This document shows, one piece after another, positions 4,430 through 55,373 of a stretch of 55,953 nucleotides of DNA. The translations under genes and the position numbers were made by a program. The stretch is from NCBI GenBank assembly GCA_977017575.1, contig CDRNVI010000159.1:1-55953 (forward strand), given 5' to 3'. The DNA comes from Paramoeba atlantica. Lineage: Eukaryota; Protista; Discosea. The stretch's first letter is position 1. Each line of letters opens with the position of its first letter. The notes under the pieces were generated by a model that searched no databases, was not told where the DNA came from, and worked only from the letters and a program-made list of their open reading frames with translations.

Positions 4430-4431
4430 TT

Positions 4432-4449
4432 TGGAGGCTCCAATGGGAA
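4432..4449 (+). promoter_or_regulatory. Primer binding site, complementary to a tRNA-Thr-like 3' end
   Basis: TGGAGGCTCCAATGGGAA lies 2 nt after the LTR. Its complement TTCCCATTGGAGCCTCCA resembles eukaryotic tRNA-Thr 3' ends (..TCCCAGTGGGGCCT-CCA, U73 discriminator). Confidence 0.7.
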
Positions 4450-6041: not shown

Positions 6042-6059
6042 AAAGGAGAAGAAAGCTGT

Positions 6060-10881: not shown

Positions 10882-11197
10882 ATTATGTTCATGGAAGAGA
10901 ACCGATTGTAGTTTGCAATTGTTAAGCTCTGTGCTTGGTCTTCTCAAGAACTGGAACAAAAATCCTTGAACATGCAATGTTGTGTGATTGGGTTGCCTAA
11001 ACATTAGAATATAATCCTCTTATCATACATAAACCTGGAAAGCTGATGGCTATTCCAGATGCATTGAGCAGGCACTTTGTTGGATACAAAAACAACAAAG
11101 ATGAAAAGAAAGATTACATGACAAATTGTTTTGAAAAAATAATTGACCTTGTGCTAAACGAAATGTCAAAAAGCAGAGCAATGTTGAGGCAAAAAAA
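10882..11197 (+). pseudogene. Gypsy pol continuation: RNase H C-terminus and tether
   Basis: YVHGREPIVVCNC*AL...LEYNPLIIHKPGKLMAIPDALSR matches the end of gypsy RNase H. Confidence 0.88.
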
Positions 11198-11299
11198 AAA
11201 AAAAAAAAAAAAAAATAGGGGGTTCAAGATACAATTGTCTGAATTTTCTATCTTTTGTTGTAGTGTGTATTCTTGTGGCTGGTTGCCACAAAAAATATT

Positions 11300-13488: not shown

Positions 13489-13575
13489 AAAAAAAAAAAA
13501 AACACAAAAACACAAAAACACAAAAATACAAAAACACAAAAACAAAAACAAAAAAAAAAAAAAAACAAACAAACG

Positions 13576-17931: not shown

Positions 17932-18071
17932 GCTTTTGGCCACTAAGTTGGCACTGAAGTGGGTTGATCCTACTTGAAAATAATAATTTAATTTAAGTAT
18001 ATTCTTGGGTGTCCAGATTACACTTCATTTCAATAAATGGCATCTCTGATGTCTAAAATTAAAAAAAAAAA

Positions 18072-19770: not shown

Positions 19771-19928
19771 ATAACCCCATCAACTTTAATATACTTGGTG
19801 CTGATCATGAAGAATCCCAAGTGGCTTCACCAACAACTGTTCCAACTGGTCAACCTGCTAATGAGTCTACTCCTTCTTCCCCTCCTTCATCTTCAGAAAT
19901 ATCTGAGGAGCCAAGGTTTTCATCATGT

Positions 19929-19935
19929 GGGAGGA
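19929..19935 (+). promoter_or_regulatory. Polypurine tract
   Basis: GGGAGGA immediately before the 3' LTR TG. Confidence 0.65.
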
Positions 19936-20126
19936 TGCAATAGAGAAATCGATGACTCCTTAATAAAGACATCTATGCCTTTTTGATTTACTAAATAAAG
20001 GAGAATGAGTGCTGATGTGAAACTGCCAAATTCTGAAACAATTCAACATTCACTTTTCAAATTCTCAAATTGCACAACAACATTTTGATTGCTTTTATTA
20101 TTTACTGTAAAAACTATCATTTTACA
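19936..20126 (+). repeat. 3' LTR (191 bp)
   Basis: Direct repeat of 4239-4429, followed by the CTAG target duplication. Confidence 0.95.
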
Positions 20127-22432: not shown

Positions 22433-23424
22433 AAGGTGACAATTCTATCCAAAAGAGACGAAAAACATCAAAGCGTAAGGTGTGCTAAAAAAGAAACTTT
22501 TTGTTTTTCTTTGATTTTCTCAATTCTTTTTTTTGATTGTGTGTGAAAAAATGAAATGATTGATCTGGTGGTGTTGTTTTTAATAGTTTGTGAATAAAGA
22601 AAAAAGAAAAAAATAACAAACTAAAACATTCATTTGAAATATGAAATAAAAAAGTTCATTGGTAAATCAAACAATCTATCATGTATCTTTCCAAACCTTT
22701 CAACTCTTCTTTTCTTTCAATTTCTTTCTTTTCTCTTTCTGTTTTTCTGTGTTTTTCTCACCTGCTGCTTTCTTTTCTGAAAAAGAAAAAAAAATCCAAT
22801 TCCCAATCAAATGTTGCCACATTATCCATTTTCTTTTTCTTTTTTTGGTTTTTTTTTTTGGTTTTTTGTTTTGAACAGTTTTTTTTTTCTTTTTTGTTTG
22901 TGAGAAAGAAAGAAAAAAAGAAAAAGAAAGAGAAAGAGAAAGATTCAACAAAAAAAAGAAAAAAACAAAAAAAAATAAAGAAAAAGGATTGTATGATCAA
23001 AATTGATTGAAAAGATCCAAATGCAAACCAAAAATAAGATTAAAGAAGAAAAAAAGAAAAAAAATTGAATTTGTATTGGTCCTATCTTGATGGAAGCTTG
23101 AACAACTAAGAAAAAACAAGAACATTTGAATTCTTTTTCACCTCCTTATCAAATTTCAAGAAAAAAAATCACACCTAAAATAAAAATCAATTTTTTGGCA
23201 AAAAAGTTTTTCTTTTTTGTTTTTTGTTTTTGTTTGATTTTTGTATTTGGTTTTTGTTTTTTGAAAGATGAAAAAAATAGACTTTTAGAAATTAAAAGAT
23301 TTTTGGTTTTTTCAATGTATTACTTTTATATTAAAAAAGAGAAATGAAAAACCAATCTATTTTTCTCAAAGTGAGAAAGATAAGAGAATTCATAAGGTTT
23401 ATCTGGTAATTTAATTCTTCAAGG

Positions 23425-23665
23425 TCTCTTCTTTCTTTTCTTTTTTCCTCTTCTTTTTTTTGTTTCTTTTTTTCTTTTTCTCTTTTTCTTTTTTGTTTCT
23501 TTTTTCTTCTTTTTTCTTCATCTCTTTTTCTTTTTACTTTTTTTCACACATTTTTTTTTTTTTTTTTTTTTCCTTTTTCCTTTTTTTTTTTCTTTTTCTC
23601 TTTTTTCTTTTTCTCTTTTTTCTTTTTCTCTTTTTTCTTTTTCTCTTTTTCTTTTTTTTTTTTGA
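23425..23665. repeat. T/C-rich low-complexity tract
   Basis: Almost exclusively T and C, with (TTTTTC)-type iterations. Confidence 0.8.
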
Positions 23666-24002
23666 AAAGATTTAGAAAAATAAAAAACTAATTCTTTTTA
23701 TTCTCAAAATGAATAATAAAAAAAGTCAAAAGGGATTCATTTTCTTTTGTGTTGAGTAGGAACAGGATTTCTTTTTTTTCAATGGTTTTTTGATTTCTTT
23801 TTTGATTTTTTTTTTTCTTTTTTTCTCATTTTCTTCTTTTTTTTTTCTTTTTGTTTTTTTTTATTTCTTTTTTATTTCAGGGTTTTGAAAGCTTAAAAAT
23901 ATGAAAGTTTGTTTTTTGTTGTTTCTTTTGAGTTTTAATCTTTTTGTTGATATTCAGAATTTTTTTTGTTTTATTTTTTTTTATTTTAATTGTTTTTTTT
24001 CT

Positions 24003-25857
24003 TTAGAAAGTGTTTTTTATCATTGAAAATGATATCATCTTATTCCCTGTGATTTACTGTATCCAAAGAATCCTATTTTTCTCTCAGATAAAGTACAATG
24101 TGATGTGATGGGTTAGAGGTTCAGTTTCTTTTTTCCAACATTTTTTTAAACAATATTTAAATAATTAAAGTTTTAATGTTTTTTCCTTCAGAAACTGTTC
24201 TTTATCATTGAAAATTATATTGTCTTATTCCTTGTAATTTATTGTATCCAAAGAAATCTATTTTTCTCTCAGATAAAACACAATGATGTGATGTGAGGGG
24301 TTCAGTTTTTTTTTTCTGATATTTTTCTAAACAATATTTAAATAATTTTGTTTTATTGTTTTTTCCTTCAGAAACTGTTCTTTATTATTGAAAATAATAT
24401 CATCTTATTCCTTGTGATTTACTGTATCCAAAGAAGTCTATTTTTCTCAGATAAAGCACAATGATGTGATATGAGAGGTTTAGTTTCTTTTTTCGGGTAT
24501 TTTTTTAAACAATAACTAATTACTTTTTTTTATTATTTTTTCCTTCAGAAACTATTCTTTATTATTGAAAATGATATCGTCTTATTTCTTGTGATTTACT
24601 GTATCCAAAGAAGTCTATTTTTCTCAGATAAAGCACTTGATGTGATGTGAGGGGTTCAGTTTCTTTTTTTTGATATTTTTTTAAACAATAACTAATTACT
24701 TTTTTTTATTGTTTTTTCCTTCAGAAACTGTTCTTTATCATTGAAAATCACATCGTCTTATTCCCTGTGATTTATTCTCTCCAAAGAAGCTTATTTTTCT
24801 CAGATAAAGCACTTGATGTGATGTGAGGGGTTCAGTTTCTTTTTTTTAATATTTTTTTAAACAATAACTAATTACTTTTTTTTATTGTTTTTTCCTTCAG
24901 AAACTGTTCTTTATTATTGAAAATCACATTGTCTTATTCCCTGTGATTTACTCTCTCTAAAGAATCCTATTTTTCTCAGATAAAGTACAATGATGTGATG
25001 TGAAGGGTTCAGTTTTTTTTTTTCAGTATTTTTTTAAACAATAACTAATTACTTTTTTTTATTGTTTTTTTCTTCAGAGAGTGTTTTTTATTATTGAAAA
25101 TTACATCATCTTATTCCTTGTGATTTACTGTATCCAAAGAATCCTATTTTTTTCTCAGATAAAACACAATGTGATGTGATGGGTTAGAGGTTCAGTTTCT
25201 TTTTTCTGATATTTTTTTAAACAATATTTAAATAATTAAAGTTTTAATGTTTTTTTCTTTCAGAGAGTGTTCTTTATCATTGAAAATAACATTGTCTTAT
25301 TCCTTGTGATTTACTGTATCTAAGGAAGTTTATTTTTCTCTCAGATAAGCACCTGATGTGATGTGAGGAGTTCAATTTCTTTTTTTCTGACATTTTTTTA
25401 AACAATAACTAATTACTTTTTTTTATTGTTTTTTCCTTCAGAGAATGTTCTTTATCATTGAAAATTACATTGTCTTATTCCTTGTGATTTACTCTCTCCA
25501 AAGAAGTCTATTTTTCTCAGATAAAACACAATGTGATGTGATGGGTTAGAGGTTCAGTTTCTTTTTTTTTGGTATTTTTTTTAAACAGTAACTAATTACT
25601 TTTTTTTATTGTTTTTTTCTTCAGAGAGTGTTTTTTATCATTGAAAATTACATTGTCTTATTCCTTGTGATTTACTGTATTCAAAGAATCCTATTTTTCT
25701 CTCAAATAAAGCACAATGTGATGTGATGGGTTAGGGATTTAGTTTCTTTTTTCTGATATTTAATATTTAAATAACTTTTTGTTTTAATATTTTTTCTTTC
25801 AGAGAATGTTCTTTATCCATTGAAAAATTGTATTGTCTTATTCCCTGTGATTTACTT
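24003..25857. repeat. Tandem satellite, ~176-186-bp unit, about 10 copies plus a partial copy
   Basis: The unit anchor (TT)CAG(A)AA..TCATTGAAAA..TCTTATTCC..GTGATTTAC recurs at ~24003, 24188, 24368, 24544, 24720, 24896, 25073, 25259, 25437, 25620 and 25798. Confidence 0.93.
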
Positions 25858-25914
25858 TTGCTTTGAAACCACCAAGAAATAAGAGCACTCTTATTTTTTA
25901 ATAGATTGAGATTT

Positions 25915-26065
25915 TTTTGTGCTTTGGTTTTCTTTCTTTTTTTTCTTTTTTTCTTTTTTTTCTTTTATTTTTTCTCTTCTTTTTCTTTTTTTTTCTCTCT
26001 TTTATTCTTTTTTGTCTCTTGCTCCTCCAATCCTTTTTTTTTTCTCTTTTCCCTCTTTCTTCCTT

Positions 26066-26110
<45 letters not shown>

Positions 26111-26130
26111 CTTTTTTCTTTTTGCTAATT
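25915..26130. repeat. Polypyrimidine tract including a long poly-T run
   Basis: T/C-only stretch with a T run around 26068-26110. Confidence 0.8.
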
Positions 26131-27389
26131 TTCCTCTTTTGCCTCTTTCTCTCTTACCAAAGTATTGTTGGGGGTTTAGGGGTAATATTATGGACCACAT
26201 CTAATTAAGTTTACAAGCTTTTTTCCCTTTCCTTTCATTGCTCCTCTTTTTTTCCTTCCCTTCCTCCCTTTCTTTGTGTTCAATTTGCTTTCTTTTCTTT
26301 TGTTTCATCTTTGACACATCCTGTCTGTGTGTGGCCAAAATCTACTCTTTTCTTTTCTGATTTATTTTTTTTCTTTTACTTTCTCTTTTGTTTTTTGGAG
26401 TTTAAAATAATAAAAAAGAAAGGTTAAAGGTTTGTTTTGTTTTTTTGAAAAATCAAAAAAATATTAATAAAAAAATCAATTTTTGATTTGTTTTATTTTT
26501 TGGTTTTTTTGAAAAAAAATGAAAAACACAAACACACAACATAATGATCACAAATGAAAAACAAACTAATATCACCTTAACAACAAACAAAAAAACCATT
26601 AACCCTTTCTTTTATCAACACAACTATTGCACAAGTCTTTGAACTTATGGAGAGTTGACCTCCTCCTTTCAGCAGTGGTGTGGTGCCCCTCCGTCTGTGT
26701 AAAGATGGCAAGAAGATGAAAAATCTGAAAATTGAAACACTAGGGTTTAGAGTTGTTATTTGGTTGTTGTTAGTTGTGTTGTTGCCTCTTTATGCTTGGT
26801 GAATCAGCAAACACTTTTATTTTTTCTTGGAAGAGGAGGGGAGGAGATGTCTCTTTAAGGTTAGAGTTTAGACTTCAATTTTCAGTGTACCAGTAAGCTG
26901 CTTTTTAAATTTTTTTTTTTTGTTTTAAGAACTCTGCCAACATAGCGATAGAGTTTTCTTTTGTTTTCTTTCTTCTCTAAACCCACAAATATTCTAACAA
27001 AAAAAAAACAAAAAAATTCTTAAAAATTCTCAAAAAAATTCTCAAAAAATTCTCAAAAAAAAATAAAAAAAATTCTCACAAAAAAAAAATAAAAAAAAGC
27101 AGAGTTCCTACCCCCTCCCATTTTTCAGGTACAAAAATCTCTTTTTTGAAGATACTTTTTTTTGTTTTTTTTTGAGAATTTTTTGAGAATTTTTTATTTT
27201 TTTTTTTGTTTTTTTTTGTTTTTTTTTTTTATTTTTTTTTTTTTTTTTGAATATTGAACACATTTTTTATGTTAGTTTCTTTCCATGTCCCATAAAGTCC
27301 TTTTTCCCTCTTTTTGTCAAAAAGACCGCCGAACATACTGGTGTTTACAAAAAAGAGAAGAAAAAAAAGCAAAAAAGTGAAAAGTACAA

Positions 27390-28470
27390 ATGACGAATGA
27401 GGACAATTTTTACTTAACAGCATTTCAATGCAACCCCCCTTCCTCTTCTTTACCACCTTTGAGAAAGAAGGAAGAGAAGTTTACGATATTACTACCTTTT
27501 TCAGTTTCTATTCCAGAGCCTTTCAGAAATTATTATTTTTCCTCCTCCATTCTCAGCAGCAGCAACAGAAGCAACCTTTTAAACCCTCTCAACAAACCTG
27601 GAAAAGAATACAAAATTTTTCCCTTTTTTTCACTTCATGAATATCATATCTTTATGAACACAAACCTTCCTCAACCACTTCTAACATTTCCACTAGTTCT
27701 TTCCCAATATTTGAGCATCTTCTTTTTCTTTTTGAAGAATTCTTGTCATTTTTCACAAAAACAAACTTCAAAAAATTTTGATCTTAAAGGAACAATTATG
27801 ATTGGATATACTGTTAATGCAATTAGGGCAACAGGTTTTTTCTTTAATTTTTTTTTCTTTAATTTTTTATCTCTTTTTTCTTTGTTTTTTTCGTTTATCT
27901 TTTTTCTCTAACTTTATTTTTGTTTCTTTTTCGTCTGTTCGTCTTACACCCTAACCCACTCCCTTTAATTGTTTTCCCCTAATTTTGGATTAGGTTTTGA
28001 AAAACCCCACAATTTTGTCCGCCATTTTAGAGTTGCTAATAATCCACTCGAACAAAAAATTCCCCAATGGAAAAAACAATTATGGCTTCAAGGGAAATAC
28101 CTATATTCTCTTCTTGATGATCACTTCACTTCTGGGGAATTTGTAATCTATGTTTCTTTAATAACATTGAATGACCAATTAGTCAAATGGCACTCTAATA
28201 AATGTAATATTACATTTCAAATTGTTATTTTTTTAGGAATGTTTGTCGGTGAGAGTTTTTTTGAATTTGAAGACCCAACAGGAGTATATACAATTCGAAT
28301 TCCAATTATTCCAGGAACAATAATTGTTTTTGATGGATGTTTGTGACATTGAAAAATTGCAATGGAAAGTTTTTGTAGGGAATAATATACTATTATTTTT
28401 TTTAAAAATTATGACCAGCAATTCTCTTCCCTGGATAATATTATGTGGCCTCCTCACTTTTATCATATTT
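27390..28470 (+). pseudogene. TET/JBP-like 2OG-Fe(II) dioxygenase pseudogene, copy 1 (intron 27835-27993)
   Basis: Spliced frame gives KNFDLKGTIMIGYTVNAIRATG/FEKPHNF...VKWHSNKCNITFQIVIFLGMFVGE...IPGTIIVFDGCL*H*KIA. HSNKCN is HxDxxD after G>A changes. Paralog of 46826-48088 with the same intron position. Confidence 0.7.
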
Positions 28471-30459
28471 CTTATAATAAAAATATTCTTTTTTTTTAAA
28501 TTCAAAAAAATTCAAAGATTTTTAATTGTTATTTTTATGGTAGGTGGTTTCAGGGTTTAAGGTTTTAGAAGAAAAAGAATCAAAAGAAGAAGAAAATCAA
28601 CAAACATCAAACACCAATTCACCAATTTTCTCTTCTTGATTTCGATTCAAATATTAATTCTTTGAAAAAAAAAAAAATTGACACAAAAAAACAACAATAA
28701 AAAGATGTCTTTTTATTCAGGACATCAATTTTTTTTTTCATTTTTTTTTTTTTTGTTTTTTTTATTTTTGAAATGAAAAAGGAGGTTTGGATTTTGGGTT
28801 GTTCTGGTGATCCTTTTGTTGTGTTGTCCAATGTTTGGCAGTTTTGTAAGTATTAAGAGGGAAAGGAGAGGAAGAAGATGTGTTATGATGATGGCAAACC
28901 ATGAAAGAAGGGAGGGGGGGGAAAGAAGTGGTGTTAAGATGAGGAAAGATCATCTCACACAATAATTGATACATGTAGTTGTTGTTGTTTGTTGTTGTTT
29001 GTTGAGAGAGCAAACATCAAGCTTTTCAGCAGTGATAAATCGTTTCTTTTTGCTGGTTTGTTCTAATTTGATTATTATAAAAGAAGAGAAATATATCTTT
29101 ACTGACTTATGTAATTAGTGATTTATTAAAGAAAATCAATCAACGGCATTCAAAGAAATTTAGGGTTTTGAAGGGGGGAGGAGAGAGAGAGTGAAAGAGA
29201 CTCGAGAGAAGAGAAAGAAAGAGAAAGAGGTTTCAAGAAGGTTTTTTATTTTTTTTTTTTTTTTTTAATTTAAAACAATAAAATAATATTTTTTTTATTT
29301 TATCCTTCAAAACACTAATTCAATATTCCTTTTTCTTTTTTTCTTTTTTTAAAGGAAGAGACGACAACGATAATATAACAGCAGGAGTTGAATATAATGA
29401 AGAGAAAAAAAAAGAAAAGATTAAGTTGAATACTTAATTTATTTTTTTTTTTCTCTCATTTTGAGTTTCAAAACAAATAAAAATCAAGAGAAAAAGGGAA
29501 GGGGGGTGGAGAGAGAGAGAGAGGAGTTCAAAAGTTGTGTTTCTTCTCTCTCTTCTTCTAATGTTTGAATAATATTGAGGAGGGTTTAAGCTCGAAAAAA
29601 GGTTTTTCTTTTCTTTTTTTGTTTCAAAGAATTCTTTTTATTGTAAAAGATTAATTTTTTTTTTTTTTGAAAAAAAGAAAAACGTTTTTGTTTTTGCTTG
29701 TTTTCTTTTTTTAGAGGTACACATGGAAAGACTAAGGTGTGGTGAGAGAGAGCAAGGACAACGATAACCTTTTTGAAAAGGTTTTTTTTGAATTTTTTTG
29801 AATGTTGGCTTGACTTTTCATTTCACTTTCGTGGTTGGAAAGAGCTTTTTCTCTTTTTGCTAAAAGAGTACACGTGCAAAAACAAAGAGTTTTCTCTCTT
29901 TTTTCAAGTAACCAACAACACCAACTCAAACAAACAAGCAACACACACTCACTCCTCCCCCTCCCTCTCTTCTTCTTTAGACGATTGGTTTTTGAGGTAT
30001 TATTTTCAACACTTCCCTTTGAGTGAATATTGTTTTTTGTTTTTATAAGAGTTTTCTGGTTTTCTGGTTTTTGGTAATGATTAAAAATGAATTTTAACTC
30101 TCTTTTTTTCTTATTGTTAGAAGAGACACGAAGCAGCTTAAGATAAGCATCCTTCCTCCCTTCTCCCTCCCCCCCTTCTCCAATCCTTTAGAAGAAAAGA
30201 GAGCATTATCGCGTGTCGTATTGTATCATATCATATCGTACATTGTGTCTAGGTGTGTGGTGTGTGTGAATTAGTAGAGTACACTCTTTATTTTTTTGTT
30301 GGCCAGTGTAGTGTAGTTCCACACTTTGGTGTGTAATCTTTCACCCAATTCGAGAGAATTATCCATCCACCATTTGCTCCACTCTCCCTCCCCCAAAATA
30401 ATACATATATGCTGGCTGGCTGGCTGGCTGGCTTGTAAAAAGGATTTATTCTTTACAGT

Positions 30460-33400
30460 ATGATGTTTTTCTCGCTTGATCACCTTGTGTTTTCACAGTT
30501 GGTGAAACAAGATTATGATTTAACTCGATTGTTTCCACCACCTCATAATGATGATCTGTTTTCCCAGCAGCAGCAGCAGCAGTATTCTTCTCCTCCTCCT
30601 TTTATGATTGTTAGAGGTTCACAGACTCAATATGTGATTTTTGTGTGTGGTCATAGTTTTATCCCAACTGCTGAAAAAAAGAGTACGAGTACTTCTGAAA
30701 AGTATTATTGGATAAAGAAATCTTTCTTGAAACAATGTCAGACAAAATCTTGCGATCCTTTGGTGATGAAGAGGTGTTCACTTGATTATGTTTCTCAATT
30801 TTTATCTTTCTCGCATATAACTTATCAAAGACTTCCTATCTTCGAAGGAGCTGTTCTACAAGGGACACTTCATTTCTCTTTTTGTTCTGAATGTAATAGT
30901 GTTGTTTGTAAAAGGAAAAGTGATTTATCAAAGAAAAAACATGCAAATGGTTGTACTTGCACTTCTTTGAACAGTCAAGTGGTGGTGGTGTATCAATAGA
31001 AAGGTGTTTTGTTTGATGGGTGTCCAACTTCTTCTTCCTCTTCTTTGTTCGAATTGACAAAAAGAGAGCAGCAGCAGCAGCAACAGAAGCAGTTTTCTTG
31101 TTCTTGTTCTTGTTTCAAGAATTCTCATCATGGTTGTTGTTCTTGTTCTTTCCCTCATTCTTATTGTTCTTCTTCTTTTGAGTCAGATCCTCCTTCTTCT
31201 TGTTGTTGTTCTTTTCTTCTTGAGACAACCACAAGAACAACAACTGACAACTCAACAACAACAACAACAACAACAACAATGAAAACAGAGGAGGAGAAAG
31301 CTGCTGCTGGTACTGCTGCTGCTGCTGGTACTGCTGCTGCTGCTGTTGGAGGAAGGAGAGAAGGAAACAACTCTGTCTCCTCTCTTTGTTTGATGTTGAA
31401 TATGAACCTGAATGAAAAAGATATGTTTTTACCATATGCGTTGAGAACAACAAATTCTGTTGAGAATGGTGGTGGTGGTGGTGGTGGGATTACAGATTAT
31501 TCATTAAAGGAAAGTCAATTTTGACAGAAACAGCTTCAAGCTCTCGATAATTCAGCTGTTGGTTCTTGTATTCCTTCATTCTTCAAACCTTTTTTGAGCT
31601 TCAATGAGATGATACCTTTTTCTTCTCATCACCATTATCGAAATGATGGTGGTGGTGGTGGTGGTGGCAGCAGCAATGGCAGCAACAGAAACAGCAGTAG
31701 GAGTTGTGGTGGTGGTAGTATGAATAAGAATCACAGCAGGTTGTTGTCTGGGTCTGGTGGTGGTGGTGGTGGAATTATTGAACCTTAGTTAAATTCATCA
31801 CCTTATAAAAATCCATTACTGGAGGTTTTGATTTCAGTTCTTTTTGAAGGAAAAGCATTTGTTTTGGGTGAGCTTTCAGTTTCAATGTGAAGAGATATTT
31901 ATTGAATTTGAACAAAAGGAGGAAATTGGGATCTTTCAATGGGACAATCTTCAGATGAAACAGTATTTTCAAAGGTTGGGCAATCAGATCAGACAACAAA
32001 ACAATATGCTTAGCATCTTCTTTCTTTATTTGAGATGATGGGAATTGATGTAGTAAGGGCTTGTGTTGGTGTTCCGGTGAGTGGTGGTGGTGGTGGTTGT
32101 GGTGGTTTTGATGGTTTAACTAAAAGAGAAGCAATTCTTTGGTTGGCTTTAAATATCTTTTCATATGCACATTGCTTGATTGGCTCGAAGTTTATTTCTC
32201 ATTCGATATCCAATGTTGTTGCCAAGTTTCTTCGAAATGGTTCTTCTGTTCATAATGATGAATTCTCCTCTTCCTCTTTTTCGTCAAACCGTTTTTCTTC
32301 TTCTTCTTCTTCTTTATCATTTCCATTGAATCATTTGAAGAAGATATTGTATGCACTTCAAATGATGGATTTATACCTATACCCTCTTGTACTTAATATT
32401 TTTGATGTTAATGTTGATGAAAATATACAAAGTCACATGATTCAGCGCTGTCGTTATAAGATTGTTTATCTTTGTCAACGACTTGGAGAGGAAGAGAAGA
32501 AGCAAGAGAAAAAAAGAAAACCAGATATTGTTTATGAAGTTGAAAAAGAAAAGAATCTTCTTCATATTTCTTGGAAAGATATTTTTTCTTTTTGTTGGAC
32601 AATTTTGTAAGTTCCAGTCATTTCTTCTTCTTCTGTTTCTTCTTCTTCCTCAATAACTCCTCGTCCTACTGCTATTGGAGAAGAAGCAACAAGAATGGCA
32701 GTGGAAAGAGGAGTGGGGCTGATGAGAACAGCAACAGGAGGAGTGAGAACATTGGCAACAAAAACACCAACAACAGAAGAGAGAATAGTGATGGAGATAG
32801 AAAGAGAAGAAGAAGAAGAGGAGGTGGTAATGAGAATGGCAGGAGGAGGAGGAGGAGGAGGAGGAGGAAGAGGAAGAGGAGGAGGAGCATTAACATTAAC
32901 AGAGGAGGAGGAAGAGGGAGAAGAGGGAACAACACCAACACAAAAGCAGGCACCATCACCACCACTCTTATTAAAGACAGTAAGAGGAGTGGGGGGAGAG
33001 GTGAAAATCTATCAATCAACCCTTTCAGCCATTGTTAAAAAACTGAAAGATATTCTTTTACAGTTTCTTCGATCTTTAAAGTTGAATTCCCTGTACCAAA
33101 ACCACGTATGGATGCCAAATGGTCTGGTAATTGCTGCTGCTGCTGCTCCCTCTTCTTCTACAAACAATCCACTGAAACCAATTACACAAAAATCAATTGT
33201 TTTGAATGATGATCTCAGCAACAGCAACAGTGGTGGTGGGGGTCATGGTGGTGGTCATGGTGGTAGTGGTAGTGGTTTTGGTGGGTTCATTAAGAAAGAT
33301 GATTAAAAGCAATTTTATTATTTATACATTCTGTACCACTACTTTTCGTCTGTGTTGACACCTCGAAAATGCGAATTTTCCTCTCTTCATTCACCAAACT

Positions 33401-35781
33401 CATTTTGTCAATGGAAACCAACTTCGAATTACCCAATTGTATTTCTTTTGGATATTAAGAAGAAGAAAGCAAGTCAATTAATCAATATTTCTTTTCTTGA
33501 TAAGTTGGCTTCTTTTTGTTTTGCAATTGATTGATAGTATCTTATTTCAATGAGTGAGGTGGTTTCAAAGTGTGAGACATGGACCTTGGATCCAGTATTA
33601 ATTGATTTGATTCTTCGTTCTCTTTTTCAGATAAGCAAATTACCCTCTGATAAAGTTCTTGAATTTCGAATACTTCAGCAAATGAAGTTAACTTGCCAAA
33701 ATGTTGTTTTTTGTAATGGTGGTAGTGGTGGTGGTGGTGGTGGTGGGGGGGGGGGGAGCGAACAACACTTCCCCCCAAAAAGTTGTTTTGGAGGAAGAGA
33801 AGGAGGAAGAGGTGGTGGTGATGAAATATTTTCTTCCTCTTCTTCTTCTTCTTCTTCATCCTCGATTTTTTCAATGTTAGCAACTGGAAATGGATATTTT
33901 TTTCAAACATTTCGAACCTCTTATGGATTTAAAAAAGAGACAAATGTGGATTTGAAATGGAGTTTCTTGGAAGAGCTTTGTACTCAATGGAGAGATTCAT
34001 TACATGCTGCGGCAACAATAATTTTACCAACTGCTGCTTCCCCCTCCCCTGGACCACCCTCCTCTTCCTTCTCCTCCTCCTCCTCGTTATTGCTGCCTCC
34101 ATTACCTTTTTCTTCTTTGATGACCTCATCATTATAGTATATGGAAGATTACTACAAAGAATTTATTGAGGCAAAGGGATGGAAAGAATTGAAACCAGAG
34201 CAAAAAGAAGATTTGATTGTGATTTCTTTAAATCACCACACTCTTATTTCTCGACCTTGTAGATTTAGGAAGTCAATTTATTATGAGTATTTTGCTTTTT
34301 CTCATGCAAAGATGAGAGAAAGAAGAGGAAGAAGAAGAGAAAACTTAAAGCAACAACAACAACAACAACAATCTGATAACGATAATGATGATAATAATTT
34401 TTTGCACCACCACCATCACCATCCTCTTCTTTTAGTTGTTCCAATGATTGCTTTTAAATTACAATCTCTTTTAATTCTTTCATCTCTTCCAACAATTTGA
34501 TGTGCGATTCTTTGTTCACAATATTTTGAACAACAACAACATCAACAAAAAAAAAGAAATGAGAAGATGTGTGGCGGTGGTGATGATGATGAAATTGATA
34601 TTTTTATTGCATGTCCTGAAGTTTTGACTATGAAAGAATTTATTGAGTGGTTAGATCTTCAACAATATGAACAATAACAAAAACAAAAAAGAACACAAAG
34701 GAGAGGAAGGAGAGAGGAAGAGGAAGAGGAGGAGAAATTTGAAGAAGAAGAAGCTTCTTCTTCTCTCAGAACAACAAATACAAATCCCACCCCCCCCTAT
34801 ATTGCTGCTGCTGTTGCAACTAATTCTTCTTCTTTGGATTTGTTGAAAAAAATCTTTTTGTTTATTTTTATTGATGAAGCTCATCTCCAATGGTCTGCTG
34901 GTCCTTCGTATTGCTTGAGCTATCTTCACTTGAGAACCACTTGTCTTAAAATTGAAGAAAAAGTTATCGAAATGTCAGGAACTTATGATTCTTCAATGTT
35001 TGAAGAAGAGATTAATGCAATTGATTGTGGGAAAGGAAAGAATGTTTTTCATGCAATTCAAGGATCTGTTGATCTTTCTGCTTCTCTTTCGAATTTTCCG
35101 AATGATGTGTTTGTTTATCCTTCCAAGGAATGCTTGGATGGAACAAAAGAAAATCTTCTTACTTATGTTTTAATACAAGTCCCCCGTGCTCAATGTCAAG
35201 TTTTGATTTATTGTCGTACAAAAAGTCAAGTCTCTGAGGTTTATTACTATTTTAAAAAATCTGATAAGTTATTCGTGTGATACTCAGATAAATGATATTC
35301 AAATGTTGTTCTTATCCCCTTTTCTTCAGACTATCGAAACAATTCAACACACTTGGAAAATATGAAATCAGTTCTTTCTTCCTCTTCATCACAACCACCA
35401 CGAAAAGAAGGAACAACAGCGGCAGCAGTGGAAAGTACTTTTATTATCATTGGAACTTCAACAATTTGTTAAGCATGTGACTTTCTAGTTCTTTCTTATT
35501 TATTGATGATGGATGTATCCTTTTCAATTTTGGATACTTTACAACTTTGTGGCTGAGTGACTCGAGGGAACTGAACTCCAGGAAAAATTGTTTTATTTAC
35601 TCCTCCTCCTCCTCCAAAATTTCTTCTTTCTTCAAAAAGGAAAGAGGAAGAAGAGGGTGAATCAATGATTTCATCTAATTCTTTTTTTCCTCTTGTTTCC
35701 TCATTATCATCAACAGTAGCAGTGCCACTGCTCCTCCCTTCCTCTCTTTCTTCTTCTTCTTTTTCTTCTTCTTCTTCTAAT
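30460..35781 (+). pseudogene. Large single-frame gene: Zn-finger + tyrosine-recombinase-like + RecQ-like SF2 helicase (telomere-linked-helicase-like), inactivated by ~19 in-frame stops
   Basis: All ORF-track pieces at 30460, 31009, 31594, 32035, 32695, 33352, 33550, 34141 and 34834 share one frame. RecQ motifs: KELKPEQ, PCRFRKS (from PCGFGKS), VPMIA, IACPEVL, DEAH, MSGT, LIYCRTK, IGTSTIC*ACDF, QLCG*VTR. The RecQ call is strong; the recombinase-like call is weaker. Confidence 0.8.
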
Positions 35782-38700
35782 TAGGGTTTATAGCTCTTGC
35801 CTAGTTCAATCTATTATTTTATAGGTTTAGGCTCTTTACTCCCTTTAAATCAATATTTTTTTTTAAAAGTCTTTTTGCAACATTAGGTTTTCCTGCAACT
35901 TAGAATTTCTTCTTTTTTTTAATTTTTCTTTAAAGAAAAGATTTTTATTTAAAATAAATGGTTGTAAGAGAAAGAAAATGGTTTCTTAAAAAAATTGAAA
36001 AAATAAATTCATTCAATTTATTTTGAAAAATTATTTATTATTTTTTTAAAAAAAACAATTGAAAAAAATTAAAAAGAAAAAAAAAAAATAGAAAACAAGT
36101 TGAAAGAGAAATAAGAAGGATTTAAAGAAAGAAAAAAGAAAAAAGAAAAAAATTCAAACAAAAAAAAGGTTAACAAAAAACATAAAAAAAAAGGAAATAA
36201 TACAATAGAAAAGATTTTAATCTATTCTTCTCTTTCTTTTGATAATAGTAACCAACACAAGGTTCAATTAATACAATAGAAAAAAAAGCAAAACAGCTTA
36301 ACATAACAAGAAGAAAAGTGAAATCCATAAAGTTCACTTAATAATTCACCTTTAAATAAAAAAAAAATAATATAAGAAAAAAAAAAGAAAAAAAATGAAG
36401 GATTTTTGATCTCTCCAAAAAAAAAAAAAAAAATATGAATCAATCAAGAATTGAACCCATCACTCCAGGCTGGCTAAACTATGCACCTCAAATCATGAAT
36501 TTATTAATCATCCAAACTAACCCTATCACTTCCATTCAAGACCTCAAAAAAAAAGTTCCACCTTAGCAAATAAACAGTTCCAACTCAATTTTGAACAAAT
36601 CTTTGAAAATTAGAATTCTGAAAAACAATCTTTCTTTTTTGGAATTCCAAAAAACAAAATACTCAGAATCCAGCCAAACACAAAAAAAAATTCATTTTTA
36701 GAATTTCAAAAAACACAAAAACCTTGTTTTCTCTTGAAAAGATAAAAAAATGAAAGAAAAAAATATAAAAAGATACAAAAAGACTCCCAAACCAAAAAAA
36801 CAACAAAGCTTACAAAAAAAACTTGAAAAAAAGAAGAACAAATCTTGTTTCTCTCTCATTCTTCAACTTTTCTGAAACTCAAAACACAAGAAAAAAACAA
36901 AAAAGAGTGGTAAATCAAAAAAAAAAACCAAAAAAACTGATATGGACATGATTTTTTTTGCAGATTTGAAAGGAATAAACAGGATTGATTTGGATGATTG
37001 ATAAATTCATGACTCAAAGTGCATAGGGTTTAGCCAGCCTGGTGTGAAAATAAATCGATTAAAAGTCTCGTCACAGAAGGATTTTGACTCTCCAAAAAAA
37101 AATTAAAAAAAATATGAACCAATTAAGAATTGAATGAAAAATAAATTGATCAAAATTCTTGTCACAGAAGGATTTTGACTCTCCAAAAAAATTAAAAAAA
37201 AAAATATGAACCAATGAAGAATTGAATCCAAAAATAAATCGATCAAAATTCTTGTCACAGAAGGATTTTGACTCCCCAAAAAAAATTAAAAAAAAAATAT
37301 GAACCAATTAAAAATTGAACAAAAAATAAATTGATCAAAATCTTTGTCACAGAAGGATTTTGACTCTCCAAAAAAATTAAAAAAAAAAATATGAACCAAT
37401 GAAGAATTGAACCCAAAAATAAATTGATCAAAATTCTCATCACAGAAGGATTTTGACTCCCCAAAAAAAATTAAAAAAAAAATATGAACCAATCAAGAAT
37501 TGAACCCAAAAATAAATTAATCAAAAGTCTGGATTTTGACTCCCAAAAAAAAAATAAAAAATTAAAAAATAAGAACCAACCAGGAATCAAACCAAAACAA
37601 AGAGAGGTGTTATATTATTCAAGAGCAACAAATATATGAAAGCAAAACTTTAATAAAAATGGATTGATAATACAACAGAAAAATAATATATTAAATATTA
37701 ATAATAAATAATCATCCCCAAAATATTAATAATTTTCATAATAAGAATTTCACACAAAGAACAAACAAAGAACAATAAATAATTAATCAACAACAACTAA
37801 TTACCATAAAAGAAGTAAACCTGATTTAGCAGCACTCAAAAATGACTCCAAAAAGCAATGATATTTTTGTTCGGGGAGAGGCAGATAGGTGATAGTTGAC
37901 ATCTGACCACAACAACAACACAACAGCAGCAGCAATTGATCATTCTATTTTATTTCTTTAAAAGAGAGAAAGAGAAAAGAAAATGAAAAAAAAAAGAAAA
38001 AAGTACTTGCAAAAGAGATTGAAAAAAAAGAGAGAAAAAAAAATTGCAAGGACGACAAATTTGGGGAGAAAAACTTCCTCTGCCCCACAACTATACTCTA
38101 TTAAAAGAAAAAAAGATTTAAAAAGAGAGAAGAGAGAGAATAAGGTTATTAGAGTTAAAGATGGGGAGATATCAACGAAAGAGAAAAGGAAAAGAGGGGA
38201 AAAGTGAAGATTTGGGGGGGGGGAGGGGGAGGGGGGAAAGGGAAAATGTCAGAGGATTGATGAGATCTCCACAGAAAATAAACAACAAAACAATAAATGA
38301 AAGTCAATCTAAAGATCAAATTGAAAAAAAGCAGAAGGTGTGGTTTATATCAAATAAAAGGAACAACAAAAGAAAGAAAGAAAGAATAGGGTTTTGAACA
38401 AAAGAGAAAATATTCAAAGAGAGAAAACACAGAAAAAATCAAATGTGACAAAAAACAAAAGGATGAATCAAAACACAGCAGGCAGGATTGTTGTTGTTGA
38501 AGGAGCACCAATGAAAGACAAAAGAGAGGGAAAAACACAAAAGAGGAAAACACTTCAAATAAGAAAGAACAATCAAAGTGAGAAGAAAACACAAATTTTT
38601 GAGGAAAAGGTAAGAAAGGAGACAAGAGAAAAACAAAAGAGGGGAGAATCAACTAAGGGGAGATTCGACAGGAAAGAGCAGTGAGAAAGACTTCAAAATG

Positions 38701-38966
38701 AATAGAAGACAACAAAACAAGGTAGAGATTTGAAATACAGAATAAGGTGGAAAGGGAAAGGGGAAAAAGGGAAAAAAGGAAGAGCAAAGAGGACACAAAA
38801 AGAGAAAGAAAAGAATGAACAAAAGAACAAAGAAAGAAGAACAAATAAAAAAGACAAAACAAACAAAAGGATGAAGAGAACCACATCTCAAGCCTCATCC
38901 ATCATAATACCCAAGAAAGGAAAAATAAACATGACAAAAACAAGTGTGACGAACAAAGGTTTAGGG
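35782..38966. repeat. Subtelomeric duplication unit 1 (~3.2 kb), bounded by telomere-like sequence
   Basis: Begins TAGGGTTTA-TAGCTCTTGCC and ends GAACAAAGGTTTAGGG. Colinear with 38967-42438. Confidence 0.92.
37070..37560. repeat. ~92-bp tandem array, 5 copies (unit 1)
   Basis: GTCACAGAAGGATTTTGACTC(C/T)CCAAAA..ATATGAACCAAT..GAATTGAACCCAAAAATAAA recurs at ~37070, 37161, 37255, 37346 and 37439. Confidence 0.9.
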
Positions 38967-38984
38967 TTTAGGGTTTAGGGTTTA
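38958..38984 (+). repeat. Interstitial telomeric repeat (~3.5 x TTTAGGG)
   Basis: GGTTTAGGGTTTAGGGTTTAGGGTTTA at the junction between duplication units. Confidence 0.9.
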
Positions 38985-41900
38985 TAGCTCTTGCCTAGTT
39001 CAACCTATTATTTTATAGGTTTAGGCTCTTTACTCTCTTTAAATCAATATTTTTTTTAAAAAGTCTTTTTGCAACATTAGGTTTTCCTGCAACTTAAAAT
39101 TTCTTCTTTTTTTTTATTTTTCTTTAAAGAAAAGATTTTTATTTAAAATAAATGGTTGTAAGAGAAAGAAAATGGTTTCTTAAAAAAATTGAAAAAATAA
39201 ATTCATTCAATTTATTTTGAAAAATTATTTATTATTTTTTTAAAAAAAACAATTGAAAAAAATTAAAAAGAAAAAAAAAAATAGAAAACAAGTTGAAAGA
39301 GAAATAAAAAGGATTTAAAGAAAGAAAAAAGAAAGAAGAAAAAAATTCAAACAAAAAAAAGGTTAACAAAAAACATAAAAAAAAAGGAAATAATACAATA
39401 GAAAAGATTTTAATCTATTCTTCTCTTTCTTTTGATAATAATAACCAACACAAGGTTCAATTAATACAATAGAAGAAAAAGCAAAACAGCTTAACATAAC
39501 AAGAAGAAAAGTGAAATCCATAAAGTTCACTCAATAATTCACCTTTAAATAAAAAAAAAAGAATATGAGAAAAAAAAAAGAAAAAAAATGAAGGATTTTT
39601 GATCTCTCCAAAAAAAAAAAAAAAAATATGAACCAATCAAGAATTGAACCCATCACTCCAGGCTGGCTAAACTGTGCACCTCGAGTTGTGAATTTATCAA
39701 TCATCCAAACTAACTCTGTCACTTCCATTCAAGGCCTCAAAAAAAAAGTTCCACCTTAGTAAATAAACAGTTCCAACTCAATTTTGAACAAACCTTTGAA
39801 AATTAGAATTCTGAAAAACAATCTTTCTTTTTTGGAATTCCAAAAAATAAAATACTCAGAATCCAGCCAAACACAAAAAAAAATTCATTTTTAGAATTTC
39901 AAAAACACAAAAACCTTGTTTTCTCTTGAAAAGATAAAAAAATAAAAGAAAAAAACACAAGAAGATACAAGAAGACTCCCAAACCAAAAAAACAACAAAG
40001 CTTACAAAAAAAACTTGAAAAAAAGAAGAACAAATCTTGTTTTTCTCTCATCTTTCAACTTTTCTGAAACTCAAAACACAAGAAAAAAACAAAAAAGAGT
40101 GGTGAATCAAAAAAAAAACCAAAAAAACTGATATGGACATGATTTTTTTTGTAGATTTGAAAGGAATAAACAGAGTTAATTTGGATGATTGATAAATTCA
40201 TGACTCAAAGTGCATAGGGTTTAGCCAGCCTGATGTGAAAATAAATTGATCAAAAGTCTCGTCACAGAAGGATTTTGATTCCCCAAAAAAAAATTAAAAA
40301 AAATATGAACCAATTAAGAATTGAACGAAAAATAAATTGATCAAAATTCTTGTCACAGAAGAATTTTAACTCCTCAAAAAAATTAAAAAAAAAAAATATG
40401 AACTAATAAAGAATTGAACCCAAAAATAAATCGATCAAAATTCTCATCACAGAAGGATTTTGACTCTCCAAAAAAATTAAAAAAAAAAATATGAACCAAT
40501 GAAGAATTGAACCCAAAAATAAATCGATCAAAATTCTTGTCACAGAAGGATTTTGACTCCCCAAAAAAATTAAAAAAAAAATATGAACCAATGAAGAATT
40601 GAACCCAAAAATAAATTGATCAAAATTCTCGTCACAGAAGGATTTTGACTCCCCAAAAAAAAATTAAAAAAAATATGAACCAATTAAGAATTGAATAAAA
40701 AATAAATTGATCAAAATTCTCGTCACAGAAGGATTTTGACTCCCCAAAAAAATTAAAAAAAAAATATGAACCAATGAAGAATTGAACTCAAAAATAAATC
40801 GATCAAAATTCTCGTCATAGAAGGATTTTGACTCCCCAAAAAAATTAAAAAAAAAAAATATGAACCAATGAAAAATTGAACCCAAAAATAAATCGATTAA
40901 AATTCTCATCACAGAAGGATTTTGACTCCCCAAAAAAAATTAAAAAAAAAATATGAACCAATAAAGAATTGAACCCAAAAATAAATCGATCAAAAGTCTG
41001 GATTTTGACTCCCAAAAAAAAAATAAAAAATTAAAAAATAAGAACCAACCAAGAATCAAACCAAAACAAAGAGAGGTGTTATATTATTCAAGAGCAACAA
41101 ATATATGAAAGCAAAACCTTAATAAAAATGGATTGATAATACAACAGAAAAATAACATGTTAAATATTAACAATAAATAATCATCCCCAAAATATTAATA
41201 ATTTTCATAATAAGAATTTCACACAAAGAACAAACAAAGAACAATAAATAATTAATCAACAACAACTAATTACCATAAAAGAAGTAAACCTGATTTAGCA
41301 GCACTCAAAAATGACTCCAAAAAGCAATAATATTTTTGTTCGGGGAGAGGCAGATGGGGTGATAGTTGACATCTGACCACAACAACAACACAGCAGCAGC
41401 AGCAATTGGTCATTCTATTTTATTTCTTTAAAAGAGAGAAAGAGAAAAGAAAATGAAAAAAAAAAGAAAAAAGTACTTACAAAAGAGATTGAAAAAAAAG
41501 AGAGAGAAAAAGATTGCAACGATGATGACAAATTTGGGGAGAAAAACTTCCTCTGCCCCACAACTACACTCTATTGAAAGAAAAAAAGATTTAAAAAGAG
41601 AGAAGAGAGAGAATAAGGTTATTAGAGTAAAGATGGGGAGATATCAACGAAAGAGAAAAGGAAAAGAGGGGAGAAGTGAAGATTTGGGGGGGGGGAGGGG
41701 AGGGGGGGAAAGGGAAAATGTCAGAGGATTGATGAGATCCCCACAGAAAATAAACAACAAAACAATAAATGAAAGTCAATCCAAAGATCAAATTGAAAAA
41801 AAGCAGAAGGTGTGGTTTATATCAAATAAAAGGAACAACAACAACAATAAAAGAAAGAATAGGGTTTTGAACAAAAGAGAAAATATTCAAAAAGAGAAAA

Positions 41901-42438
41901 CACAAAAAAAAATCAAATGTAACAAAAAACAAAAGGATGAATCAAAACACAGCAGGCAGGGTTGAAGGAGCACAAAGCACCAACGAAAGACAAAAGAGAG
42001 GGAAAAACACAAAAGAGGAAAACACTCCAAATAAGAAAGAACAATCAAAGTGAGAAGAAAACACAAATTTTTGAGGAAAAGGTAAGAAAGGAGACAGGAG
42101 AAAAACAAAAGAGGGGAGAATCAACCAGGGGGAGATTCGACAGGAAAGAGCAGTGAGAAAGACTTCAAAATGAATAGAAGACAACAGAACAAGGTAGAGG
42201 TTTGAAATACAGAATAAGGTGGAAAGGGAAAGGGGAAAAAGGGGAAAAAGGAAGAGCAAAGAGGACACAAAAAGATAAAGAAAAGAACGAACAAAAGAAC
42301 AAAGAAAGAAGAACAAATAAAAAAGACAAGACAAACAAAAGGATGAAGAAAACCGCATCTCAAGCCTCATCCATCATGATACCCAAGAAAGGAAAAATAA
42401 ACATGACAAAAACAAGTGTGACGAACAAGGGTTTAGGG
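38967..42438. repeat. Subtelomeric duplication unit 2 (~3.5 kb)
   Basis: Copy of unit 1. The extra length comes mostly from a longer 92-bp array. Ends GGGTTTAGGG. Confidence 0.92.
40261..41030. repeat. ~92-bp tandem array, 8 copies (unit 2)
   Basis: Same unit as 37070-37560, at ~40261, 40351, 40446, 40540, 40631, 40721, 40813 and 40908. Confidence 0.9.
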
Positions 42439-44265
42439 TAGCGAATAAAAGACACACAAACAAAAGGAAAAGAAATCAAAAACCCAAAAAAAAAAGGAAA
42501 GGGGGGAGAAGAGGAGAGAAAGGACTAAAACAAAAAAAAAAAAACACTGAGAGGAAACAAAGAAGAAAAACCTGATCACATAGGGGAGGGATAATGTTCT
42601 GAGCAATCCACACCACAATTCTTCCTTCCTCTCTCTCCGTGTGTGGTTTTTGAAGCAATCTCTCACCTCATCAAGATCAACTCTTTTTCTCTTTTTTTTA
42701 CACACACAAAGAAAACAAAAAAAGAGTTGTTTGATGAAAGAAGCAAAAAAAAGTCTCTTCCCCTTGCCGCCCTCCTAACTTTGACTCCCTCCATCACCCT
42801 CCCCCGAACAAGCAATAATTGATCATTCTATTTTATTTTTTTAAAAGAGAGAAAGAGAAAGAGAAAGAGAAAATGAAAAAAAAAAGAAAAAGTACTTGCA
42901 AAAAAGATTGAAAAAAAAAAAAAAGAGAAAAAGATTGCAACGACGACAACGAAAAGGAGAAAAACTTCCTCTGCCCCACAACTACACTCTATTGAAAGAA
43001 AAAAAGGTTTAAAAAGAGAGAAGAAAGAGAATAAGGTTATTAGAGTAAAGATGGGGAGATATCAACAAAAGAGAAAAGGAAAAGAGGGGGAAGTGAAGAT
43101 TTGGGGAGGGAAGGGAAAGGGAAAATGTCAGGATTGATGAAATCTCCACAGAAAAACAACAAAACAATAAACGAAAGTTAATCCAAAGATCAAATCGAAA
43201 AAGCAAAAGGTGTGGTTTATATCAAATAAAAGGAACAACAACAACAAAAGAAAGAATAGGGTTTTGAACAAAAGAGAAAATATTCAAAGAGAGAAAACAC
43301 AGAAAAAAATCAAATGTGGCAAAAAACAAAAGGATGAATCAAAACACAGCAGACAGGGTTGAAGGAGCACAAAGCACCAACGAAAGACAAAAGAGAGGGA
43401 AAAACACAAAAGAGGAAAACACTCCAAATAAGAAAGAACAATCAAAGTGAGAAAACAAATTTTTGAGGAAAAGGTAAGAAAGGAGACAGGAGAAAAACAA
43501 AAGAGGGGAGAATCAACCAGGGGGAGATTCGACAGGAAAGAGCAGTGAGAAAGACTTCAAAATGAATAGAAGACAACAGAACAAGGTAAGGGTTCACAAC
43601 AGAAAAGGGTTTAGGGAAGGGAGAGTGAAAGGGAAGGGGGAAAAGGGGGAAAAGGAAGAGCAAAGAGGACACAAAAAGACAATAAAGAAAAGAACGAACA
43701 AAAGAACAAAAAAAGAAGAACAAATAAAAAAGACAAGACAAACAAAAGGATGAAGAGAACCGCATCTCAAGCCTCATCCATCATGATACCCAAGAAAGGA
43801 AAAATAAACATGACGAAAACAAGTGTGAAAAACAAGGGTTTAGGGTGGCGAACAAAAGACACACAAACAAAAGACACACAAACAAAAGACACACAAACAA
43901 AAGACACACACAAACAAAAGACACACAAACAAAAGGAAAAGAGATCAAAAACCAAAAAAAAAGGGGGGAAAAGAGGAGAGAAAGGACAAAAAAAAAAAAA
44001 CACTGAGAGGAAATAAAGAAGAAAACCTAATCACATAGGGGAAGGATAATGTTCTGAGTTCTGAGCAATCCACACCACAATTCTTCCTTCCTCTCTCCGT
44101 GTGTGGTCTTTGAAGCGATCTTTCACCTCATCAAGATTAACTCTTTTTCTCTTTTTTTTATACACACAAAGAAAACAAAAAAAGAGTTGTTTGAAAGAAG
44201 CAAAAAAAGTCTTTTCCCTTTGCCCCCTGACCGCGACTCCCTCCATCCCCCCCGAACAAGCAACA
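41400..44265. repeat. Second-level ~1.4-kb tandem duplication (41400-42812 / 42812-44265)
   Basis: The block ATTG(A/G)TCATTCTATTTT..CAAG(G)GTTTAGGG occurs at 37931, 41401 and 42815. The following block GCGAA(T/C)AAAAGACACAC..CCCCGAACAAGCAA occurs at 42441 and 43849. Confidence 0.85.
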
Positions 44266-55353: not shown

Positions 55354-55373
55354 ACCTCCTCTCATATCCAGGT

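Follow-up and report, generated by a model that had tools for sequence, protein, structure and literature searches.

A 55,953-nucleotide stretch of DNA from Paramoeba atlantica (contig CDRNVI010000159.1 of assembly GCA_977017575.1; the whole stretch is called the window below) carries at 30460-35781, on the plus strand, the remains of a large gene. We read these 1774 codons as a decayed, 3'-truncated pseudogene copy of a multi-copy subtelomeric family that encoded a very large RecQ-type helicase protein, and we put the probability of this reading at about 75%. The gene itself is documented by frame statistics, an alignment with paralogs and a reconstruction of the ancestral coding sequence, and its subtelomeric setting by the repeats around it and the telomere that ends the window. 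An earlier note, made from the letters of the window, had described the gene as a fusion of three modules, of zinc-finger, tyrosine-recombinase-like and RecQ helicase type.

One reading frame broken by decayed codons

Frame 1 of 30460-35781 contains 19 in-frame stops (nine TGA, five TAG and five TAA) against 49, 86, 92, 99 and 112 stops in the remaining five frames. The frame is opened by an ATG at 30460, upstream of which the sequence is rich in stops. Four paralogous contigs, all from one public assembly (ENA ERZ24900291) and ~93% identical to the window at the nucleotide level, bring the family to at least five copies with the window included. Insertions and deletions of the window relative to these four paralogs are multiples of three and lie in low-complexity tracts only, so the window copy has suffered no frameshift; the exceptions in the comparison with the paralog on contig L001 are changes of 2 bp and 1 bp in that copy itself and a short interspersed nuclear element (SINE) of 443 bp. 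The claim of the earlier note that the separate fragments of open reading frame (ORF) and the gaps between them share one frame is borne out by these counts.

At every one of the 19 stops for which two or more other copies can be compared, at least one of these has CGA, TGG, CAG or CAA. Since the stops derive from these codons, the ancestor was one intact ORF. We reconstructed it from the five-copy alignment by choosing, column by column, C over T and G over A. The reconstruction clears 16 of the 19 stops; the other three fall in a region represented by just two copies, each of which reads TGA. The window copy differs from the reconstruction at 136 amino acids, some of them in the Walker A motif. 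The sister copies thereby confirm that the stops are decayed arginine, glutamine and tryptophan codons, as had been supposed before any paralog was at hand. The peptides quoted at that time are correctly placed (the arginine at 33364 is codon 969 and the tyrosine at 33922 codon 1155), and the ancestral LRQ and GH residues that had been guessed were both recovered in the reconstruction.

A spectrum of C>T and G>A changes

The window and the L001 copy are separated by 301 substitutions, 293 of which are transitions. When changes seen in a single copy were polarised in the five-copy alignment, 244 of 258 (95%) were C>T or G>A, the rest being nine reverse transitions and five transversions. Counted per copy and site, 27% of CpG cytosines have changed, compared with 4-5% of cytosines in CpA, CpC and CpT. 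A pyrimidine before the mutated C is slightly preferred, and the alternation of C>T with G>A changes within each copy is what chance would give, with no strand-coordinated clustering. The signature of CpG deamination spans the whole subtelomere and not the gene alone: the observed/expected ratio of CpG is 0.17-0.31 throughout the window, TpG and CpA are in excess, and TpA, at 0.43, is not enriched. Likewise, the ~3.2-kb repeat units that follow the gene differ from each other by 95 transitions and 15 transversions.

Logan contigs from three DNA runs of the same organism each show 58-65 A>G or T>C differences from the window, with 1-9 in the reverse direction, and their undecayed letters cover the stops at 30998, 31787, 31888, 31903, 31909 and 32011. 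The organism therefore also contains an undecayed version, and the copy in the window descends from it by deamination. One part of the gene, the poly-Ser/poly-Gln/poly-His tracts at 33842-34375, is covered by no Logan contig in runs X1, X3 and X4, its flanks having a word depth of several hundred; rather than a deletion, this gap probably reflects how the repeats were assembled or filtered.

That nineteen stops of all three kinds stand in a perfectly kept frame could also be explained by a live gene whose stops are read through or recoded, be it through a variant genetic code, editing or programmed readthrough. We find this barely credible. Recoding and a variant code are excluded by the sense codons (CGA, TGG, CAG and CAA) that the sister copies and the public DNA contigs have at these positions. 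C>T changes also strike positions other than stops, as in the 136 amino-acid differences and the Walker A motif, and the same spectrum is found in the 3.2-kb repeats and the non-coding flank (the polarised spectrum of the upstream block itself was spoiled by poly-T misalignment and is not relied on). Moreover, other ORFs of the window, such as the reverse transcriptase and RNase H genes, use the standard code, and the copy has lost its 3' end.

Repeat-induced point mutation (RIP) of fungi and the decay of 5-methylcytosine in plant and animal repeats also leave near-pure C>T and G>A changes, and stops without frameshifts, in duplicated DNA. Classic fungal RIP would explain the C>T-only spectrum, but the changes here favour CpG (27%) over a flat background at the other cytosines (4-5%) and not CpA, TpA stays at 0.43 without enrichment, and strand clustering is absent. 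In these respects the decay resembles the deamination of methylcytosine more closely than it does classic RIP. In silenced repeats, such deamination would fit the spectrum better than either RIP or a processive single-strand deaminase.

A divergent RecQ-like helicase at the C-terminus

As judged from the reconstructed sequence, the C-terminal ~500 codons are a divergent RecQ-like superfamily 2 (SF2) helicase of the DEAH type. Its core, at 34138-35640 on the plus strand, contains motifs 0, I, Ia, Ib, II, III, IV, V and VI, as identified by the reconstruction, the alignment with RecQ and protein-language-model features. The reconstructed motifs read KPEQ (0), PCGFGKS (I), VVPTIAF (Ia) and ACPE (Ib); FIDEAH (II), followed by a W and a Y-R-x-x-Y aromatic-rich loop (DEAH..W..YRSSY); and MSGT (III), LIYCRT (IV), IIGTST..ACDF (V) and QLCG(R)VTRG (VI). 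The features by which the RecQ family is recognised, namely motif 0, Walker A, DEAH with its aromatic-rich loop, an IYC-type motif IV, and motifs V and VI, are thus all present in the reconstruction.

The relationship to RecQ was further supported by alignment with the annotated K-12 record of E. coli RecQ. In a blastp comparison with the reconstruction, motif 0/I aligned at E=2e-4, and the part from DEAH to motif VI aligned as a single collinear high-scoring segment pair. Smith-Waterman scores, set against 200 shuffles, gave z=6.5 for RecQ, compared with 1.3 for the DEAD-box helicase RhlB and 0.2 and -0.7 for the superfamily 1 helicases Rep and UvrD. The Atlas protein-language-model features of the actual window piece pointed to DEAD-domain clusters, including basidiomycete fragments and a 'DNA helicase Q5' cluster (0.94, 173 shared features). 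Collinear motifs, alignment score and language-model features agree with the RecQ-like module that had been read at the C-terminus. The motif set called complete at that time is found in the helicase core after C>T is undone and not in the window copy itself, where Walker A is mutated to PCRFRKS and stops lie inside motifs V and VI; to judge by these lesions, the helicase is dead in this copy. The ~1200 residues before the helicase belong to no recognisable family.

A duplicated subtelomeric block, cut at a telomere-repeat relic

The window ends in 83 TTTAGGG repeats at 55370-55953, with the G-strand on the gene's plus strand, and therefore reaches a chromosome end towards which the gene points; the TTTAGGG chromosome end named in the earlier note is the same tract. 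The last codon of the gene lies 19.6 kb from this telomere. The poly-Ser (TCT)n tract of the gene passes at 35781 into TTAGGGTTTATAGC, a sequence that also follows (TTTAGGG)3 at 38960-38980. At this junction (35779-35790, plus strand), the tract abuts TTAGGGTTTA, the start of the first unit of a ~3.2-kb subtelomeric repeat. The paralog on L001, by comparison, stays in frame past this point for 80 more codons (240 bp), up to the end of its contig. The window copy is cut inside the gene, at a junction with a telomere-repeat relic in telomere orientation. The cut is consistent with a terminal break that was healed by telomere addition and later buried by subtelomeric repeats, an order of events that we infer. 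Breakage and telomere healing have been reported as a fate of Magnaporthe's telomere-linked helicase (TLH) copies (PMC1635262).

The repeat itself extends over 35781-43846 on the plus strand as 2.3 units (35781-38967, 38975-42439 and the partial 42811-43846), the first two of which are 94-95% identical. Each unit holds 93-bp satellite arrays (37047-37530, 40238-40999), and the units are bounded by telomere repeats in telomere orientation, with (TTTAGGG)3 standing before the second.

On the other side of the gene, homology to the paralogs begins at window positions ~22.4-26.9 kb and runs until each contig ends inside the gene. The homology common to the copies thus extends from ~22.4 kb to 35.78 kb of the window, a block of at least 13 kb, and it reaches at least 8 kb upstream of the ATG. 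The upstream part of this block (22433-30459, plus strand) includes a 176-bp tandem array at 23984-25856 and a decayed 2-oxoglutarate (2OG)-dioxygenase-like ORF at 27969-28496, and it is interrupted only by copy-specific insertions of SINEs and long interspersed nuclear elements (LINEs). In the window and the four paralogs, no terminal repeats, element ends or target-site duplications bracket the gene, and tblastn found no second helicase copy in the window. Because the shared flank is long and no element ends bracket the gene, we conclude that the family spreads as part of the subtelomere, in the manner of the TLH genes and of the Y' elements of S. cerevisiae. This indicates that the copies are a subtelomeric segmental duplication. 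A compact transposon is ruled out by homology that continues upstream of the start codon for 8 kb or more, and the discrete mobile element imagined earlier was not upheld, the shared ends not being tight to the gene.

Another possibility is that this is a dispersed family of RecQ-like pseudogenes, or cargo of repeats, that has come to lie in the subtelomere by chance and has no specific link to telomeres. The distance of 19.6 kb to the telomere, the debris of LINE, long terminal repeat (LTR) and SINE elements around the gene, and the paralog contigs, which give no telomere distance, would all agree with such a chance location. Against it, the gene's cut 3' end borders on a relic of telomere repeats that lies in telomere orientation, the units that follow are bounded by (TTTAGGG)3, and every contig carrying the gene breaks in repeats, as expected of sequence from a chromosome end. 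We consider a chance location unlikely and retain a subtelomeric family as the better reading.

Several observations weigh against that reading. The copy in the window is as far as 19.6 kb from the telomere, and all four paralog contigs break inside the gene. The stops split the helicase domain into pieces of 58-200 residues, and it is such pieces that the libraries were queried with. Ten window pieces and nine paralog ORFs searched against Pfam, PHROGs and NCBIfam, as well as the PDB sequence searches, gave no significant match, to the DEAD and Helicase_C models or to any other, for any stop-free piece, those from the helicase included; the phmmer and profile searches of the PDB returned low-complexity or His-tag artefacts only. 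Since no family model matched, the RecQ assignment is drawn from the reconstruction, one reference protein, the reading of motifs and a language-model lead. When a 200-aa helicase piece was searched exhaustively with HMMER against 1.84 billion representatives, the one protein found was a 107-aa paralog fragment (87% identity), and the search thus gave no sequence link to the fungal TLH proteins discussed below. Of two word-index protein searches, one, with another piece, found four paralog fragments, and the other found the query itself as its sole match.

Some further features of the window and of the paralog contigs are recorded here. The 176-bp array at the upstream edge region of the block counts 10.4 copies, has a period of 353 bp as well, and is also found in L001, L003 and L004. 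The 443-bp SINE of L001 (L001:9432-9874, inserted in the helicase region at window position 34844) is derived from a tRNA and has an A-rich tail and a ~16-bp target-site duplication; a copy 95% identical to it lies upstream of the gene in L002 (4001-4423). The ORF at 27969-28496, 2 kb upstream of the helicase gene and within the duplicated block, has a decayed paralog at 47555-48052, and the two share 58% amino-acid identity once C>T is undone. Both contain an HxD...H pattern that recalls 2OG-Fe(II) dioxygenases, a reading for which Pfam and PDB sequence searches gave no support. Retroelement debris occupies 1-20000, with reverse transcriptase and RNase H of an LTR element at 7818-8489 and LINE-type reverse transcriptase, zf-RVT and RNase H at 15681-17597 and 1477-2388; L002:1-3653 encodes an intact 1272-aa LINE ORF of the same kind. 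No Rfam family and no tRNA was found in the window.

The region upstream of the helicase

TLH proteins have two N-terminal C2H2 motifs, a TLH domain of ~250 aa and then the RecQ helicase (10.1101/2024.02.27.582403, PMC1635262, 10.1101/2022.03.07.483234). In the gene studied here, the ~260 codons directly before the helicase (33280-34059, plus strand), which include a Gly/Ser low-complexity insert of ~49 codons, carry a string of motifs that resembles the active site of tyrosine recombinases. The reconstruction holds TPRKCEFSSL, DIKKKK, FRILRQM and GNGHSLQTFRTSY, which supply R-x-x-E-x-x-x-L (R969), KKKK (1000-1003), R-I-L-R (1070-1073) and G-H-x8-Y (GH at 1145-1146, Y1155), and their order is the canonical one. 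They are spaced by 32-34, 70-72, 24 (with the 49-residue Gly/Ser insert removed) and 9, where XerD has 24, 75, 23 and 9; with the insert discounted, order and spacing resemble those of XerD, Cre and lambda Int. The first His of HxxR is an Arg here (RxxR), and the 49-residue insert sits inside box II.

These motifs raise the possibility that zinc-finger, tyrosine-recombinase and RecQ helicase modules are fused in this gene, and that it encodes the enzyme of a mobile element colonising or maintaining chromosome ends by site-specific recombination. Besides the order and the near-XerD spacings of R, K, RxxR, GH and Y, this possibility is favoured by the position of the region, which in TLH proteins is taken by a conserved domain without known function. 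An ordered regular-expression chain of the motifs recurred in only 42 of 20000 composition-preserving shuffles (0.2%), although the expression was framed after the sequence had been seen. The separate blocks point both ways: among ~1755 positions, the K block ranks 2nd, box IIb 9th and box I 25th, but the HxLRH block ranks 817th, the Arg replaces the first His of HxxR, and ~0.6 such chains are expected by chance.

Homology searches gave no support. With the intact paralog ORFs over the region (L004:8768-9646, L002:10657-11994) as queries, Pfam, PHROGs and NCBIfam returned nothing at E up to 1-10, and a PDB profile search of the region returned low-complexity matches only. Against a profile of six bacterial and phage proteins (XerC, XerD, Int, Cre, FimB and FimE), hmmsearch scored -2.8 bits, lower than shuffles, and hhalign gave a probability of 0.3% against the alignment of the same six. 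In a spaced chain test with position-specific scoring matrices (PSSMs) for the blocks, the highest-scoring chain fell outside the proposed positions, and an equal or higher score was reached by 643 of 1000 shuffles. The Atlas features of the region gave no usable match. AlphaFold, given too few homologs for a usable model, reached a pLDDT of 32 for a 293-aa intact paralog ORF and 44 for its 145-aa first half, and Foldseek found nothing in the PDB at E<=0.001 with these low-confidence models. The long flank shared by the copies, with no element ends or target-site duplications around the gene, also speaks against a mobile recombinase gene.

The recombinase module of the earlier note was therefore not sustained: motifs and spacing are present, and profile, profile-profile, block-PSSM, language-model and structure tests do not support it. 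The fusion seems to us doubtful, and so does the narrower idea, argued from the arrangement of residues, that the ~260-residue region might be a catalytic domain of tyrosine-recombinase or topoisomerase-IB-like kind that has diverged strongly and has R-K-RxxR-H-Y as its active site. We keep a low probability for the recombinase because tyrosine recombinases of eukaryotes are difficult to recognise and the copies compared were all decayed and nearly identical. Set beside known tyrosine recombinases (XerC/D, lambda Int and Cre, and the Crypton and DIRS enzymes of eukaryotes), the region can be matched in how R, K, xxR, H and Y are ordered and spaced, whereas it shows no detected profile, block or fold similarity, has RxxR in place of HxxR and carries a 49-residue insert in box II. 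If the idea were true, the region, and possibly the TLH domain of fungi and choanoflagellates too, would make these proteins recombinase-helicase fusions that cut and rejoin DNA of chromosome ends, which would give telomere-linked helicases a concrete mechanism and a mobile-element origin. Unsupported as it is here, the idea points to specific residues that can be tested.

As for the zinc finger, the sole Zn-binding-like string that a regular-expression search found in the reconstruction is C-x2-C-x15-H-x3-C at codons 142-165 (30883-30954, plus strand), which is unlike both published C2H2 patterns of TLH proteins. These patterns (Cx2-3Cx8-14Hx3-5H and Cx2-5Cx11-16Hx4-5H) had no match in the reconstruction, and Pfam returned nothing.

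Spread, decay and possible role of the family

Taking the gene as a member of a decayed subtelomeric helicase family, its history can be sketched as follows. The ancestor was an intact ORF whose copies spread together with the subtelomeric block, 13 kb or more in length, that contains them. Afterwards each copy gathered almost only C>T and G>A changes, on both strands, and the copy in the window lost its 3' end at a telomere-repeat relic. The spread may have proceeded by recombination or break-induced replication between chromosome ends, and the decay would reflect deamination of cytosine or methylcytosine in silenced, repeated subtelomeric DNA. By analogy with the fungal TLH proteins and with Y'-Help1 of S. 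cerevisiae, the intact protein might unwind G-rich DNA or recombination intermediates at chromosome ends, and could possibly serve as a backup when telomeres fail.

TLH families have been described from fungi and a single choanoflagellate, and what they do is not yet known. A family of this layout and setting in a protist with TTTAGGG telomeres, if real, would mean either that the arrangement is far older and wider than has been assumed or that RecQ-type helicases are recruited to chromosome ends time and again. The copies are also a clean natural record of a near-pure cytosine-deamination spectrum in subtelomeric repeats, which makes silencing based on methylation directly testable.

Comparison with known systems

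Among subtelomeric helicases, the family of DEAD/H helicases in the kinetoplastid T. cruzi consists mostly of pseudogenes and is sometimes the first gene beside the telomere. The T. cruzi gene, taken here from its description, bears the annotation of an RNA helicase and has a link to an N-acetyltransferase gene; it may be related to the family in the window. The Y' helicase of S. cerevisiae (Y'-Help1) resembles the present case in being a helicase gene within a subtelomeric repeat, with interstitial telomere repeats between units and spread from one chromosome end to another by recombination. It differs in being much shorter and only remotely RecQ-like, and its induction in telomerase-negative survivors has been shown.

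The closest comparison is with the TLH proteins, which are known from many fungi and from the choanoflagellate Monosiga brevicollis. Many TLH copies have been truncated by chromosome breakage, hit by transposons or mutated, and in Botrytis they lie 9 bp to 63 kb from chromosome ends (10.1101/2024.02.27.582403, PMC1635262, 10.1101/2022.03.07.483234). The resemblance to the fungal proteins proposed in the earlier note holds for the helicase, for the setting, which is multi-copy and subtelomeric, for the damage to the copies and for the position of the upstream region, and fails for the C2H2 patterns. As in TLH families, the ORF is very large and ends in a RecQ core, whose motifs are present in the reconstruction, and the genes are multi-copy and subtelomeric, with tandem repeats and telomere-like tracts alongside and many copies damaged; here the telomere lies 19.6 kb distal and the 3' end is cut at a telomere-repeat relic. 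A region of ~250 residues stands directly upstream of the helicase in TLH proteins, and the ~260 residues of 33280-34059 occupy the same place, a likeness of position and length. Unlike in TLH proteins, the two N-terminal C2H2 motifs of the published patterns are absent (the TLH of U. maydis is also without C2H2 motifs), the host lies outside the opisthokonts and has TTTAGGG telomeres, and the decay is almost purely C>T.

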